A stretch of DNA of 64,000 nt from Macrostomum lignano (GCA_002269645.1 NIVC01000507.1:499876-563875); one strand, 5' to 3'; shown: positions 15,244 to 36,296, numbered from the stretch's first letter. The notes: generated by a model not told the origin, from the sequence alone. Program-made: numbers and translations.

Positions 15244-18200
15244 CTAGGACATAAACAGGAACATTATGTCTGGAGATAGAATGCGAGCAGATACGCTCAG
15301 TAAACTGATCATCTTCTCCAGACTGTCGGTGACGAGTTCCGGCTTCTCTAACAGGCTGTACAGCTTCTGTAACAGGTTTTTTGGATTAGAAAAGTTTCTG
15401 AACAAATGATTTGGGCTTGAAATAGCGTTGAGGCTGGTGAAAAAAGTTAGCGGAGGGTACAGACCATAAAATAAGGGTGGGTAAAGAGATCAGTAGAGGG
15501 TATAGACAGAAAAGATAGGCGGGATAAAGAGAACAGAGGAGGGTACAGATAGAAGAGAGGCAAGTAAAGATACAGCGTAGGGTATAGACAGAAAAGAGGC
15601 GGGTAAAGAGAACATCGGAGGGTGCAGATAGAAGAGAGGCGGGTAAAGATACGGTGTAGAGTATAGATGGAAAAAAGAGCCGGGTAAAGAGACCAGCGGA
15701 GGGTATAGATAGAAGAGAGGCAGGTAAAGAGACCAGCGGAGGGTATAGATAGAAGAGAGGCAGGTAAAGAGACCAGCGGAGGGTAAAGATATAAGAGAAG
15801 CGGATAAGAGACCAGTGGAGGGTATAGATAATAGAGAGGCGGGTAAAGAAACGGCGTAGGGTATAGATAGAAAAAAGAGGCGGGTAAAGAGAATAGCGGA
15901 GGGTGCAGACAAGAGAGGCGGGTAAAGACAGCATAGGTAAAAGAAACAAGTTGGCCCTCTGGCATCCCCACCTGCGGCCCGAAGCTCAGATCGGTGTCGC
16001 GCTCCATCACCCGGAATTTCTGCACAGCGCCTTTGTCGTCCCGAACCAGCAGTAGCGCGTATTCTACAAAAGGAGCGTTGATCGCTGAATGGCTGGCCGG
16101 CTGCGGCTGCTGCTTTTGCGAGTCTTTGCGCCGTAGAAGCAACTGAAAATTGCCGCCCTGCATTCGGCAGACCCTGTCGGCGGCTTCCGCTTCGGCCGCG
16201 GCGGTGGCGGCGGCGGTGGCGGCGGCGGTGGCTTGCAAAGCCGTTTCGGTGTCAGCGACAGCAGCAGCAGGCGACAGAAGCAGCACACTTTCGAGGGAGC
16301 GGAACCGGCTGGCCAGCTTCTGCTGACAGCGTCTGCGTGTGTGTGTGGTTTAAATGGTCGCGCCACGGATTTTATGGTGGGGGACAACGCCGAGGATTCT
16401 GCGTGTACATGTACCATGACTAAATTTCTAAGTGTACATTCTGCATGTACATGTACATGACTAAATTTCTACATGTACATGACTAAATTTCTAGATGTAC
16501 ATGACTAAATTTCTAGATGTACATGACTAAATTTCTACGTGTACATGACTAAATTTCTACATGTACATTATCGGAGCCGCAGGAAGGCACTCATTTTGGC
16601 GTCGCAGGCGCTATGTTTTGTCGCCCTGAAGCAAAATTATTGATTTCCATAACGGGTCACAAGGTGCATGGGGTGTAAGGGTGGGGGACAGACGCAAGGT
16701 GGGGAAACAAAGCGTACCCCATAGCTTTTGCTGGGGTGAACATGTCCCCCCGGTGGCGACGCCCCTGGTCGTAGATACGTGTACACATCATCACCTGACT
16801 GATTATAGCGCTCCGATTCTTTTCTAGCCTTGTATTTTAGACCCGTAGCCTCGAGACAACATTCTTTATTCACTTGAACTGCACTGCATGCACTCACTTG
16901 AGGAGAGGGCCGGGCTTAAATCATCAAAATACCCAGGCCATGCTTAAAATATGGCCACGCGTTAAATTATCCGAGCTCAAAGTTTGGCATTCAGATGCGC
17001 GCTTAATCTCATGCGTCCCCCTGATCAACGCGTCTAACTCGCAGCGGCCATTGACATTAATTTGGGGCTTTCGTGCCAGCGATTCACACCAATAAGAGCC
17101 ACCCCCCCCCCAGGTACAGAGTGTGTACAATGGCCTCTACACCCTGTTGTCCATGGCCTTCGATTGTCAGACCATTTGTAAGCAGCAAAGATTATTTCTA
17201 CCTATACTTACGCCAACGGCAGCGTCATCCTCGCCTTCAAGGACGAAGCCCAGCTCGAGCTCGCGCTGGCTAACCTGGTGTCCATCTCTTGGGACACCTG
17301 CACGACCGCCCTCCCGCCTTTGGTCGTTGAGCGTGCCCGACCACCGCCGCCCTGCAGGCGCTACCGAGCCTTCTACTCCGGCTCGAGAAGCATCGAGGAG
17401 ATCCGCGCCCGGCTCCTCAGTAAAAACCCCGACCTACCTCAGGACGGTATCCGGGCCTTCAAGGAGGTTCCGGCAAAAGGCGCTCCCGGCAAGACCCTGT
17501 ACATGGGTTTCTCCGCGGAGTGGGAAGACGCCCTCAAGAAGGACGATTTTGCCGCCTACATCGGAGCGTGGAAGATCGTCTTCCACCTGCTGCTCAGGCG
17601 TCGTCCAGCCGGCGATCGGCGCCGAGGTGAGTCCGTGAGCTCGGATAGCTCTGGGAACGAGTAATGCCGTTCCCAACCCCGTGCCAAACTAGGAGCGGGG
17701 CGCTGAGGGCGAACCTTAACGGCCAGCCCAATGATGACACTGCCACCAGCAACCAAATAAATAATCCGCCGCCGGCGAACCAACCTGTTAACCTGCACAT
17801 TATTCAGATCAACCTGCACCACGCCCTTGCAGCATCGAGCAACCTTTCAGGCACCTTTGCCAACAAGGAAGTTGACATCTACCTTATTCAGGAACCGTAT
17901 ACCCGCAAGGGGAAGCCGACCTGCCTGCCGCCAGGCTATCAGGTTCTGTACCTCTGCGCGAACGACACCCCCAGGGCTATCGCCCTCGTCAAAAACGACC
18001 TCCCGGCCACTATTATGCCAATGTTTTGCTCTAAAGACATGTGTACTTTCTCAGTCTTTGACTTGACCTTCGTTTCCGCTTACCTGGACATCCAGGAAGA
18101 CGTCCCTCCCCCCCTCCTGCAGGAGCTGGCGGACTTCTGTAATCTCCAGGATCGGAAGCTTATCGTTAGCTGCGATGCTAACGCCCACAACACTGCCTGG

Positions 18201-34700: not shown

Positions 34701-36296
34701 AACTATCTGCTCCATTCTAGGAAACCATATGCTATAATCTAGGAAGCCATCTGCCAATTTTAGGAAACCATCTGTCCCATTCTAGGAAACCATCTGCTCT
34801 CCATTCTAGGAAATAATCTGCCATATTCTAGGAATCATTTACCATACTCTAGGAAACCAACTGCCATATTCTAGAAAATCATCACCCATATTCTAGGAAA
34901 CGGTCCCTGCTCTTGCTACTCACGTGCACTGTTCCAAATTAACGACATCTTTGCACTGCTGAGAAGAATCGTTGCTAAACAGGAAAAGCCGATGCGCTCG
35001 CAAAACTGCATAGTAGACAACGACTGCAATATGGTTTCATAATTACGAGCTTGGGTTTATTGATTAGTAGTTAATTAAAGTTATTAATTGCTTGACATAT
35101 CAGGTTTGATCAAATATTCGTACAGGAATTCTCCAGAGTCCTTGGATCTTTCTCCAGTTTCACCAGATAGTCGCTCTGCTCAGCGCTGGTGCTGTGAAAT
35201 CTGTAGACTCTCAGGTAGGCCACTGTGTTGGTAGAAACATGGCAAATGATAGTATACTGTCTGATTAGTGAGGGAGGCTGGATTCAAACTGCATCCTCAT
35301 TCCGATGGTTTGAATTAGTCTGCGATTTACTGCGTTTCTTATCTCTCTCACCCCTCCCTTCCGTTTAATTAGCTATCTATCATCTCTGTCTCTCTAATCT
35401 ATCATCTCTGTCTCTCTAATCTATCATCTCTGTCTCTCTCATCTATCATCTCTGTCTCTCTAATCTATCATCTCTGTCTCTCTAATCTATCATCTCTGTC
35501 TCTCTCATCTATCATCTCTGTCTCTCTAATCTATCATCTCTGTCTCTCTCATCTATCATCTCTGTCTCTCTAATCTATCATCCCTATCTCTCTCATCTAT
35601 CATCTCTGTCTCTCTAATCTATCATCTCTGTCTCTCTCATCTATCATCTCTGTCTCTCTCATCTATCATCTCTGTCTCTCTCATCTATCATCTCTGTCTC
35701 TCTCATTTATCATCTCTGTCTCTCTCATCTATCATCTCTGTCTCTCTCATCTATCATCTCTGTCTCTCTCATCTATCATCTCTGTCTCTCTAATATATCA
35801 TCTCTGTCTCTCTAATCTATCATCTTTGTCTCTCTTATCTATCAACTCTGTCTCTCTAATCTATCATCTCTGTCTCTCTAATCTATCATCTTTGTCTCTC
35901 TAATCTATCATCTCTGTCTATCTAATCTATCATCTCTGTCTCTCTAATCTATCATCTCTGTCTGTCTAATTTATCATCTCTGTCTCTCTAATTTCTAATA
36001 TCTGTCTCTCTCATCTCTGCCACTCATCTACCTCTCTCCTCTATCTCTCTCTCGTAACTGCCTCTGTCGTCCCTGTGTCTCTTATTTCGCAAAATTTTTC
36101 CTCTTATTTTTTTCTAATTTGTGTCTTTTTCATCTCTGTCTGTCATCTCTATCGCTCGTCTCTATCTCTCATCTGTATCAATCTCCTTATCCCTGCCCTC
36201 GTGAGCACAGATGCGATGCGTCATTATCTAAATGAGCAACGAATAAAAAGATGTTATTTTACCTGAGAGCTTCTGTAGACCAGCAATTCTCGACAT
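28728..36296 (-). CDS. PH + Pro-rich + 3x SH2-like adaptor, paralogue B (about 785 aa); exons 36296-36263, 35222-35124, 35023-34924, ~34295-33735, 33004-32489, 32280-32008, 31697-31620, 30459-30324, 29959-29817, 29707-29413, 28850-28728
   Basis: The first three exons (34, 99, 100 nt) and the last exon (123 nt) equal those of paralogue A in length. [11 protein letters not shown] vs [11 protein letters not shown]; [13 protein letters not shown]; [15 protein letters not shown]; [12 protein letters not shown]...RRPYDLE; [25 protein letters not shown]...[12 protein letters not shown]...PFQLVP; GNFLVLRR...ELVTD...LSPDI. The start of exon 4 is uncertain. Confidence 0.82.
28860..29410. repeat. (GATA)n microsatellite making up essentially the whole last intron of gene B
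   Basis: The repeat runs from next to the donor at 29412 to about 10 nt from the acceptor at 28851. Confidence 0.97.
30012..30278. repeat. (TCTG)n microsatellite in a gene B intron
   Basis: Direct. Confidence 0.97.
30565..31570. repeat. C-rich minisatellite of about 21-28 bp (CCCTCAGCAGGAACTCCTCCCCCCACT) in a gene B intron
   Basis: About 40 units; the opposite strand is G-rich. Confidence 0.95.
32290..32478. repeat. (TTAG)n microsatellite, reading (CTAA)n on the gene B sense strand
   Basis: Fills the 208-nt intron 32488-32281. Confidence 0.97.
33030..33712. repeat. 12-bp minisatellite (CAGTCTAGT(C/T)TA) filling a gene B intron
   Basis: About 56 units; source of the spurious SLQS ORF. Confidence 0.97.
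34430..34900. repeat. About 22-bp tandem repeat (TTCTAGGAAACCATCTGCTCCA) in gene B intron 3
   Basis: About 21 units. Confidence 0.93.
35375..35995. repeat. About 22-bp tandem repeat (ATCTATCATCTCTGTCTCTCT(A/C)) in gene B intron 1
   Basis: About 28 units. Confidence 0.95.

Follow-up and report, generated by a model that had tools for sequence, protein, structure and literature searches.

The window analyzed here, a stretch of 64,000 nucleotides from Macrostomum lignano (GCA_002269645.1 NIVC01000507.1:499876-563875), raises the question of what kind of protein is encoded between positions 15244 and 36296. An earlier note on this DNA had joined scattered open reading frames into two tandem genes, each specifying an N-terminal PH-like domain, a low-complexity linker and three consecutive SH2-like domains, and had proposed a multivalent phosphotyrosine (pTyr) adaptor that is recruited to the membrane via its PH domain. 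The analysis described below leads to a more restrained answer. The two genes, here called A and B, probably encode non-catalytic scaffolds related to the SH3BP2 type of adaptor, in which two of the SH2 domains, and not all three, would read pTyr.

Two tandem genes

Both gene models were built by hand and independently from the raw sequence. Gene A (36296-28728) and its tandem paralogue gene B (27071-15244), located 1.66 kb downstream, are on the minus strand and contain 11 exons each, encoding proteins of 785 and 949 amino acids, respectively (Table 1), where about 785 and 950 had been predicted. The predicted limits are exact: position 15244 is the final base of the stop codon of gene B, and position 36296 is the A of the ATG of gene A. 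The GT-AG joins, matching phases and near-identical exon structures were recovered as well, with GT-AG borders at all 20 introns, equal start phases in the two genes (0,1,1,2,2,2,2,2,0,2,0) and exon lengths that are mostly equal or nearly so. The frame of gene A is unbroken to the TGA at 28730-28728, and each gene has a separate stop codon with an AATAAA sequence 143 nt (gene A) or 128 nt (gene B) downstream. At exon 8 of gene A, an alternative in-frame acceptor at 30525, which would add 22 residues, competes with that at 30459, and the choice is ambiguous. Satellites and one retrotransposon fill the introns; the intron between exons 9 and 10 of gene B measures 5.8 kb and contains an antisense non-LTR retrotransposon.

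That the tandem pair is no chance assembly is further borne out by tblastn matches between paralogous exons (up to E = 6e-36) and by the M. lignano UniProt entry A0A1I8G3B9 (P0003, 289 aa), an exact substring of the gene B model (residues 501-789) that covers junctions 5/6, 6/7, 7/8 and 8/9. Between genes A and B, the SH2 region shows differences at 38% of first, 29% of second and 57.5% of third codon positions, and different codons are used at 149 of 316 identical residues. This pattern is that of an old coding sequence kept by purifying selection.

Table 1. Features of genes A and B, with positions counted from the first nucleotide of the window; exons are given from high to low positions.
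Feature	Position	Strand	Residues	Remarks
Gene A, N-terminal extension	36296-36263 + 35222-35173	minus		28 aa; exon 1 and start of exon 2
Gene A, PH-like domain	34097..35172	minus	29-144	exons 2, 3 and start of exon 4
Gene A, linker	32554..34096	minus	145-415	translation and motif scan
Gene A, SH2 domain 1	31697..32553	minus	416-528	last part of exon 5, all of exon 6; VYMLRG
Gene A, SH2 domain 2	29707..31696	minus	529-647	exons 7-9; WNHG...GTYTLRF
Gene A, domain 3	28731..29706	minus	648-785	exons 10-11; Leu at betaB5 (GNFLVLRR)
Gene B, PH-like domain	25887..26629	minus	29-137	
Gene B, linker	24570..25886	minus	138-547	translation and motif scan
Gene B, SH2 domain 1	23276..24569	minus	548-663	exon 6 match to gene A; domain 1 family profile
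Gene B, SH2 domain 2	16332..23275	minus	664-789	exons 7-9; Pfam SH2
Gene B, domain 3	15247..16331	minus	790-949	exons 10-11; aligned with gene A domain 3
Gene A, exons 1-6	36296-36263, 35222-35124, 35023-34924, 34295-33735, 33004-32489, 32280-32008	minus		
Gene A, exons 7-11	31697-31620, 30459-30324, 29959-29817, 29707-29413, 28850-28728	minus		
Gene B, exons 1-6	27071-27038, 26679-26581, 26480-26381, 26064-24988, 24900-24505, 23653-23372	minus		
Gene B, exons 7-11	23276-23196, 22668-22536, 22324-22161, 16332-15972, 15366-15244	minus		
Exon lengths A/B (nt), exons 1-6				34/34, 99/99, 100/100, 561/1077, 516/396, 273/282
Exon lengths A/B (nt), exons 7-11				78/81, 136/133, 143/164, 295/361, 123/123

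Domain architecture

Most single-sequence Pfam scores were under the curated cut-offs. By family profiles, domains 1 and 2 are clearly SH2 domains. All 63 PDB matches of the domain 1 profile with E up to 1 were SH2 domains, with that of SH3BP2 (2cr4) on top (E = 9e-4; by hhalign, probability 90.7%, E = 1.3e-6). For domain 2, the SH2 domains of VAV2 (E = 7e-7), p85 and PLC-gamma1 were the best matches, and the best 60 of 154 matches were SH2 domains only. Domain 2 of gene B also matched Pfam SH2 (PF00017) as a single sequence, with 31 bits (E = 2.7e-7) against a gathering cut-off of 21 bits; the single-sequence scores of gene A were sub-threshold. Exon 6 of gene B, in domain 1, is 61% identical to that of gene A (E = 6e-36). 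Domains 1 and 2, spaced by ~15 residues, are homologous as judged by hhalign (probability 96.8%, E = 2e-10).

The third domain follows domain 2 via a conserved PFQL-x-x-RCQ junction and, in gene B, carries an Ala/Thr-rich insert. It had no Pfam match and no significant sequence match in the PDB, where the best SH2 match of its profile, PTK6, appeared among noise (E = 0.11). Comparison by hhalign with domains 1 and 2 gave E-values of 2.7e-4 and 3.1e-4, respectively, at a probability of ~40% and in the correct register. Structure prediction and Foldseek, suggested as a check in the earlier note, did return an SH2-type fold: the AlphaFold2 model of the domain alone, based on an alignment of six paralogues (pLDDT 66, pTM 0.58), has the SH2 order alphaA-betaB-betaC-betaD-alphaB, in which a helix is followed by three long strands, by short ones and by a second helix, and the top 50 PDB matches of this model were all SH2 domains, with a best E of 3.5e-3, TM-scores of 0.3-0.55 and no match reaching E = 1e-3. 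A model of the entire three-domain region, made from an alignment of two sequences, had a pLDDT of 32, and only its secondary-structure order, three successive units of a helix, three strands and a helix, agrees with an array of SH2 domains. Thus, of the three SH2-like domains claimed, which lie head to tail, two are clear by profile, and the third is, with moderate confidence, a degenerate SH2 fold.

At the N-terminus, a PH domain is probable. The match of gene A to Pfam PH (PF00169), of 22.2 bits (E = 2e-4), is below the 25.1-bit cut-off and spans positions 4-59 of the 105 in the profile only, i.e., the first half with strands beta1-beta4, and gene B alone and the other paralogues did not match this profile. 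The gene B region, to which the N-terminal region of gene A (residues 1-182) is 44% identical, contributes to family profiles A7/A8, which match only PH structures. At E up to 10, the PH family profile retrieved only three PDB chains, all of them PH domains: IPCEF1 (0.0085), ARHGAP25 (0.07) and SKAP55 (0.24). Across five paralogues, Trp132 of the predicted C-terminal helix shows no variation, and the paralogue fragments P0013 and P0014 carry the automatic name 'PH domain-containing protein' in UniProt. The PH-like domain of the earlier note is thereby upheld by structures that are exclusively PH domains, but the Pfam score is sub-threshold and half-domain, and the region carries a Cys-rich insert. 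Its role in membrane recruitment was pure inference and is unsupported. Across the family, there is no conservation of the basic beta1-beta2 motif by which PH domains that bind phosphoinositides are typically marked.

Between the PH-like and SH2 domains, translation revealed disordered linkers of 270-410 residues, which are Pro/Gln-rich and of low complexity in both genes, as had been noticed. In gene A, acidic Tyr motifs (SEYDNDEYD) are followed by Pro/Gln-rich sequence with PxxPx[KR] motifs. The linker of gene B includes a coding 21-nt minisatellite at 25066-25625, specifying heptads of the type QQKPQQE, and a PPLPPK motif. Class II SH3-ligand motifs (PxxPx[KR], e.g., PPLPPK) were found by motif scan in both genes. 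The divergence between the two linkers is about equal at codon positions 1, 2 and 3. As proposed earlier, neither protein contains a catalytic domain.

Relation to known adaptors

SH3BP2, or 3BP2, is a vertebrate adaptor that consists of a PH domain, a proline-rich region and one SH2 domain and that acts downstream of Syk, Src and Abl. The products of genes A and B resemble SH3BP2 in the absence of any catalytic domain and in the order of their parts, with a PH-type domain at the N-terminus, an extended disordered linker that is Pro-rich and contains SH3 ligands, and SH2 at the C-terminus. Because of this common PH/Pro-rich/SH2 order, and because the SH2 domain of SH3BP2 is the solved structure closest to domain 1, the family is better viewed as a lineage-specific elaboration of the SH3BP2 adaptor type, with three SH2-fold domains instead of one, than as an unrelated system.

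A closer relationship is conceivable, in which the genes are Macrostomum co-orthologues of SH3BP2, with its single SH2 domain triplicated in the flatworm lineage, and thus belong to a known family. Human SH3BP2 has an acidic Tyr-rich stretch after the PH domain and then Pro-rich SH3 ligands, and gene A shows the same succession directly after its PH-like domain; this adds to the common domain order and the top rank of 2cr4. However, the score of domain 1 does not discriminate: SHP2 ties with SH3BP2 at 22.6 bits, followed by Src (21.3) and NCK2 (20.5), with ABL also within 2 bits. Moreover, the similarity of the PH-like domain to the PH domain of SH3BP2 was not significant by hhalign (E = 0.66, against the human sequence), and no SH3BP2 protein appeared at E = 1e-3 in an exhaustive database scan (see below). 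The RxxPDG hexapeptide, which binds tankyrase and, judged by human SH3BP2, marks the SH3BP2 family, is absent from genes A and B and from four paralogues (regular expression R..[PGAC][DE]G). We consider co-orthology the less likely reading.

Other known proteins resemble parts of the architecture. Tandem-SH2 proteins, i.e., Syk/ZAP-70, SHP1/2, PI3K p85, PLC-gamma and p120 RasGAP, contain two SH2 domains and carry or regulate catalytic activity. They share with genes A and B two canonical SH2 domains close together, and the spacing of domains 1 and 2 could likewise permit a doubly phosphorylated motif to be read in a bidentate manner, but genes A and B lack an enzyme domain and have a third, degenerate SH2 domain. 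The latter is reminiscent of Spt6, in which an SH2 fold without a canonical pTyr pocket lies directly behind a more canonical SH2 domain. The SH2 domain of Spt6 (3gxw) was the best Foldseek match of domain 3, a fold-level likeness with only 9-10% identity, and Spt6, which acts in the nucleus as an elongation factor for transcription, has an unrelated architecture. Finally, STAP1/2, DAPP1/Bam32, SH2B/APS/Lnk and Grb7/10/14 also combine PH domains with SH2-based pTyr reading in non-catalytic proteins, but each has a single SH2 domain and either arranges its domains differently or has additional ones. Specific sequence similarity to these proteins was not detected, the PH profile having matched only the three structures listed above.

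Proposed phosphotyrosine reading

Nearly every SH2 domain has an Arg at position betaB5, which is the key ligand of the phosphate (PMC12470777). From alignments A3-A6 and the PDB profile alignments, an Arg could be read at this position in domain 1 (VYMLRG) and domain 2 (TYTLRF/TYALRM), aligned with the Arg of 'YCIRN' in SH3BP2 and 'YLIRE' in VAV2. In domain 3 (GNFLVLRR/GNFQLLLR), the residue aligned with the Arg of 'FLIRV' in PTK6 is a Leu (strand 36-40 in the AlphaFold2 model). Since this Leu is found in both genes, each protein would have at most two canonical pTyr pockets, and the term 'multivalent' in the earlier note was an overstatement. Across A, B, P0006, P0007, P0009 and P0010, in this order, the betaB5 residues are R, R, R, H, V and A in domain 1, R, R, R, L, V and R in domain 2, and L, L, H, R, E and W in domain 3. 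The Arg is thus replaced in several domains of P0007 and P0010 and absent from all three of P0009, so pTyr binding is not a property conserved family-wide.

These replacements could mean that the whole family functions as a pTyr-independent scaffold, its SH2 folds being remnants that serve different protein contacts, with the betaB5 Arg of genes A and B functionally dispensable. By manual alignment, domains 1 and 2 of both genes also miss the Arg at alphaA2. However, the subgroup of A, B and P0006 has kept the betaB5 Arg in both domains at only 34-48% overall identity, domains 1 and 2 of genes A and B retain a Lys in position betaD4 and an Arg in position betaD6 (manual alignment to Src), and the SH2 region displays the pattern of purifying selection. 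Complete independence of pTyr is, therefore, rather improbable for genes A and B.

In the favored reading, that of an SH3BP2-related scaffold with two pTyr-reading domains, the most likely ligands of domains 1 and 2 are one or two phosphotyrosines, perhaps in a doubly phosphorylated motif, bound in a mode comparable to that of the tandem SH2 pairs of Syk/ZAP-70, SHP2, p85 and PLC-gamma. Domain 3 is most likely a structural or pTyr-independent module, joined to domain 2 via the PFQL-x-x-RCQ junction. The linker would recruit SH3-domain proteins and may itself be tyrosine-phosphorylated, whilst the PH-like domain may add a further targeting contact, to either lipid or protein. Together, these features would make the proteins an enlarged version of SH3BP2-type adaptors, acting downstream of tyrosine kinases.

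A family in M. lignano

When 1.84 billion representative proteins were scanned exhaustively with HMMER, relatives emerged from M. lignano only; at E = 1e-3, no protein from outside Macrostomum, SH3BP2 included, was retrieved. The family comprises at least six divergent paralogue types, all in M. lignano. Identity between genes A and B amounts to 48% in the SH2 region, and that between gene A and the other paralogues to 22-34% across the domains aligned. The proposals of a lineage-specific family and of strong protein divergence agree with these data. UniProt and NCBI hold fragmentary or full-length models of family members, automatically named 'SH2 domain-containing protein' or 'PH domain-containing protein'. 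In the literature searched, family members are not mentioned, and no PH + 3xSH2 adaptor was found described, consistent with the statement in the earlier note that no such non-catalytic adaptor was known. Its further suggestion of an undescribed system holds for the literature searched, but has to be qualified given the database models and the SH3BP2-type character of the family.

It is conceivable, at somewhat less than even chances, that this is the first non-catalytic adaptor architecture with a PH and triple SH2 domains, occurring only in Macrostomum or macrostomorph flatworms, and with the betaB5 Arg kept, shuffled or lost across paralogues. If so, the family would constitute a natural series of SH2 domains, from pTyr readers to pTyr-independent modules, in an animal for which transgenesis and RNAi are available.

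The public models for loci A and B are fragmentary and mutually inconsistent (P0001, P0002, P0004, P0005), and the full architecture is present in single models of P0007 and P0009. The latter, PAA90348.1 (722 aa), has the same layout of PH-like domain, linker and three domains as genes A and B (alignment A3). It derives from the NCBI Mlig_3_7 annotation, which is genome-guided and RNA-seq-based according to the assembly paper (PMC5730564), and the whole architecture can thus sit on one mRNA. That the models are artefacts, i.e., exons of separate genes joined by eye or decaying duplicates in a repeat-rich polyploid genome, might be suspected from the repeat-filled introns and the inconsistent public models, but is very improbable considering the 11 exons in frame with identical phases in both copies, the codon-position pattern that fits purifying selection, the exact agreement of P0003 over four junctions, and the complete single models P0007 and P0009, the latter from an RNA-seq-guided annotation (PMC5730564). 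One exon in the gene for PAA90348.1 also measures 273 nt, as does exon 6 of gene A.

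Two Paralogous Genes

The minus strand contains, from 15.2 to 36.3 kb, many short open segments (stop-to-stop frames) that line up as two collinear series with tblastn matches between them. The exon encoding the first SH2 domain is 61% identical between the two series (E = 6e-36); for the PH exons, the exons of SH2-like domains 2 and 3, and the final exon, E lies between 1e-5 and 3e-13. Gene models A and B, built by reading the DNA at each open segment, contain 11 exons each, and all introns are GT-AG with a continuous frame. The gene sizes and end coordinates of an earlier note on this DNA were reproduced exactly by these independently rebuilt models. 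Exon start phases (0,1,1,2,2,2,2,2,0,2,0) are the same in A and B, and exon lengths are equal or nearly equal, two linker exons excepted. The 78-nt exon 7 of gene A encodes the WxHG...AE sequence at the start of the second SH2 domain and shares a conserved 12-residue match with gene B (tblastn). Its 81-nt equivalent in gene B is confirmed by P0003 (UniProt A0A1I8G3B9), a 289-residue Macrostomum lignano protein, which is an exact substring of the gene B product (residues 501-789) and crosses four junctions, the 81-nt exon included.

The genes are arranged head to tail, 1.66 kb apart. Since each has its own stop codon followed after 128-143 nt by AATAAA, they are two genes. In the SH2 region, 38%, 29%, and 57.5% of codon positions 1, 2, and 3, respectively, differ between A and B, and 149 of 316 identical residues are encoded by different codons, which indicates that the duplication is old and that the SH2 region is under purifying selection. 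This codon-position pattern is absent from the linker.

For exon 8 of gene A, there is a choice between two AG acceptors, both in frame. The upstream site (30525) is preceded by the better pyrimidine tract and would add 22 residues between helix αA and strand βB of SH2 domain 2, an extension without equivalent in gene B; the pair may reflect alternative splicing or a decoy site. Spliced-leader trans-splicing is common in M. lignano (PMC5730564), and an acceptor-like TTGCAG just before the gene A ATG would fit with it. No equally obvious site was found in the region before the gene B ATG.

Coordinates of genes A and B and of other features in the window
Feature	Position	Strand	Remark
Gene A	36296-28728	-	785 aa
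Gene B	27071-15244	-	949 aa
TTGCAG acceptor-like site	36305-36299		6 nt upstream of gene A ATG
Gene A exon 8 acceptors	30459; 30525
Cys-rich insert, gene A	about 34270-34170		aa 85-120
Cys-rich insert, gene B	about 26040-25970		aa 85-110
Gene B exon 4 minisatellite	25066-25625		21/42/63-nt period
Repeat-rich region	14270-37039
(AGAC)153	27492-28103		A-B spacer
(GATA)135 satellite	28860-29401
(TGTC)67 satellite	30011-30280
27-mer x38 satellite	30615-31580
(AGTT)48 satellite	32286-32478
12-mer x57 satellite	33033-33711
56-mer x13 satellite	23718-24415
Non-LTR retrotransposon	17664-21482	+	intact 1272-aa ORF
Possible retrotransposon ORF1	17123-17664
HSP70-family exon	688-1197	-
NT-C2 domain ORF	54492-55052	-

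Three Consecutive SH2 Folds

Because single-sequence Pfam searches mostly remained below threshold, with only the second SH2 domain of gene B passing (31 bits vs. 21), alignments of six paralogues for each block (A4-A8) were run as profiles against all PDB sequences. With an E limit of 1, all 63 matches of the domain 1 profile were SH2 domains, the best being that of SH3BP2 (2cr4; E = 9e-4). With domain 2, the best 60 of 154 matches were all SH2 domains, with VAV2 at the top (E = 7e-7). In profile-profile comparison, the two domains match each other with a probability of 96.8% (E = 2e-10). Judged from these profiles, both are SH2 domains.

The profile of domain 3 had no significant match in the PDB; the SH2 domain of PTK6 appeared at E = 0.11, amid noise. 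Profile-profile comparison of domain 3 with domains 1 and 2 gave E values of about 3e-4 each, at a probability of about 40%, in the correct register, with alignment of the strands GxF(L/V)V and (V)xxFRI and of the helix SLE(K/E)L. An AlphaFold2 model of the whole three-domain region, based on a two-sequence alignment (A + B), reached a pLDDT of only 32 and was kept out of the fold search. Domain 3 alone, modeled from the six-paralogue alignment without domain 1 or 2 sequences, reached a pLDDT of 66 and a pTM of 0.58 and shows the SH2 order of elements: one helix, then three long and some short strands, then another helix. When this model was searched against the PDB with Foldseek, the best 50 matches were all SH2 domains (best E = 3.5e-3), including those of Spt6, Lck, SOCS1, Src, Vav2, Crk/CED-2, p85, and RasGAP. 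Domain 3 is thus concluded to have an SH2 fold that has diverged strongly. The architecture of a PH-like domain, a linker, and three SH2 folds holds in both genes.

Phosphotyrosine Pockets

In SH2 domains, phosphate is bound mainly by Arg βB5 of the FLVR motif, a nearly invariant residue (PMC12470777). It is kept in domain 1 of A and B (VYMLRG), where it aligns with the Arg of YCIRN in SH3BP2, and in domain 2 (TYTLRF and TYALRM, respectively), where it aligns with the Arg of YLIRE in VAV2. In a manual alignment to Src, βD4 is Lys and βD6 is Arg in both domains. The corresponding sequences of domain 3 are GNFLVLRR and GNFQLLLR. The earlier note had envisaged a multivalent phosphotyrosine adaptor with three SH2-like domains; the threefold architecture stands, but with Leu at βB5 of domain 3, binding is predicted for two of the domains only. 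The βB5 residues, read from the alignment of the PH-like domain through domain 3 (A3) and the per-domain blocks (A4-A6), imply that two canonical pockets are kept in the A/B/P0006 subgroup and none in P0009.

Paralogue types and their βB5 residues in domains 1-3 (P numbers, database proteins; residues in the first two rows are those of genes A and B)
Type	Members or remark	Domain 1	Domain 2	Domain 3
Gene A-like	P0001, P0002, P0005, P0008	R	R	L
Gene B-like	P0003, P0004	R	R	L
P0006	mis-fused model	R	R	H
P0007	735 aa	H	L	R
P0009	722 aa; NCBI PAA90348.1	V	V	E
P0010	493 aa	A	R	W

PH-Like Domain and Linker

The N-terminus is probably a PH domain, as judged by sequence. The single sequence of gene A scores 22 bits in Pfam, vs. 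a cut-off of 25.1 bits, and the profile of the N-terminal block retrieved only three PDB chains, all PH domains, i.e., IPCEF1 (E = 0.0085), ARHGAP25, and SKAP55, with the match spanning β1-β4 only. A basic β1-β2 motif is known from phosphoinositide-binding PH domains. It is not conserved in the alignment of this block (A8), which leaves the PH-mediated membrane recruitment suggested earlier unsupported. The second half of the domain carries a Cys-rich insert, one form of which is SWPHCGECFE; apart from a conserved W-P, it is poorly kept across the paralogues. Just past the domain lies a conserved motif, EL(S/A)(G/E)LWA(T/S)L (gene A aa 167-176, gene B aa 146-155), which reads ELDELLASL in P0006.

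The linkers contain class II SH3-ligand motifs (PxxPx[KR]); one of these, PPLPPK, occurs in gene B and is repeated about 30 times in P0006. Acidic tyrosine motifs, such as SEYDNDEYD and DEDHYEIPD, are found in gene A, P0007, and P0009. Exon 4 of gene B contains a coding minisatellite of QQKPQQE-type heptads, to which most of the difference in length between the two proteins is due. In P0006, a comparable array consists of about 30 units of 15 residues with PPLPPK.

A Family Found in M. lignano

When 1.84 billion representative proteins were scanned exhaustively by HMMER with a profile built from the SH2 regions of A and B, ten proteins had E values of 1e-3 or below, all of them M. lignano entries, and among the matches listed for the six-paralogue profile, only close M. 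lignano proteins appeared. No relatives were found in the metagenome contigs scanned, nor was a third member in the rest of the window. Full-length gene A, used as the query in a word-indexed search for homologues, gave no match, probably swamped by its Pro/Gln linker. The lineage restriction suggested in the earlier note is thus upheld, since all protein relatives found are from M. lignano, and they represent at least six divergent paralogue types. P0007 and P0009 can be aligned with A and B over the full span from the PH-like region to domain 3 (22-26% identity). The Mlig_3_7 annotation, from which P0009 originates, is genome-guided and RNA-seq-based (PMC5730564), and hence at least one paralogue has the whole architecture in a single annotated transcript model. 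A 273-nt exon of the P0009 gene equals exon 6 of gene A in length.

The family proteins are already in the databases as automatic entries without any study. The locus names Mlig007324, Mlig013114, and Mlig020138 are absent from the searchable literature, and nothing relevant on Macrostomum SH2 proteins was found in the literature searched. Of the earlier interpretation as a whole, the architecture and the lineage restriction survive, but phosphotyrosine binding seems possible for only two of the three SH2 folds, and membrane recruitment by the PH domain is unsupported.

Relation to Known Adaptors and Possible Function

The domain arrangements used in modular phosphotyrosine signaling are limited in number. 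Among known plans, that of SH3BP2/3BP2 is nearest: a PH domain, a Pro-rich region, and an SH2 domain follow each other in the same order as in A and B, and its SH2 domain is the one most similar to domain 1. However, that score is a tie with SHP2, with Src, NCK, and ABL within 2 bits; comparison of the PH regions was not significant (the SH2 part of the human sequence used agrees with the 2cr4 alignment); the tankyrase-binding motif of SH3BP2 is absent from A and B; and three SH2 folds stand against one. On these four grounds, membership of the SH3BP2 family was set aside. Human SH2 proteins reportedly have at most two SH2 domains. We know of no studied protein with three, nor of a studied adaptor combining a PH domain with three SH2 folds without an enzyme domain, and no protein with three SH2 domains was found in the literature searched.

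The proteins may act as non-catalytic scaffolds, in the manner of an SH3BP2-type adaptor that has been enlarged. Only about 15 residues separate domains 1 and 2, which would recognize a single phosphotyrosine or a pair of them, possibly in a bidentate manner by analogy with Syk/ZAP-70, SHP2, p85, and PLC-γ. Domain 3, joined to domain 2 through a conserved PFQL-x-x-RCQ sequence, is comparable to the cryptic second SH2 domain of Spt6 and probably has a structural role or one independent of phosphotyrosine. SH3 proteins would be recruited by the linker, which is possibly phosphorylated itself, and the PH-like domain may provide an additional contact.

If expressed as modeled, these genes would represent an SH3BP2-type plan that was extended in flatworms by internal SH2 duplication, followed by expansion of the gene family. 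The scope is one lineage, and the known logic of phosphotyrosine signaling is unchanged. The pattern of Arg βB5 loss across the paralogues offers a tractable case of functional change in SH2 domains. Expression and knock-down tests are feasible, since M. lignano, a model for stem cells and regeneration, is amenable to transgenesis (PMC5730564).

Other Elements in the Window

The HSP70-family exon (Pfam, E = 3e-43) belongs to a neighboring gene downstream of gene B; no relation was found between it and the part of an HSP70-family gene that lies beside P0009 in locus L001. An ORF with an NT-C2 domain of the EHBP1/EEIG1 type (E = 1e-5, barely over the Pfam cut-off) probably represents an exon of a further gene, located upstream of gene A. 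The non-LTR retrotransposon lies antisense in gene B, within the 5.8-kb intron that separates exons 9 and 10, and its ORF encodes an endonuclease (Pfam, E = 3e-21), a reverse transcriptase (5e-30), and an RNase H (5e-13). Its uninterrupted reading frame suggests a young, possibly active copy. Many introns of A and B, their flanks, and the spacer between them consist largely of micro- or minisatellites, which give rise to many long spurious ORFs on both strands.
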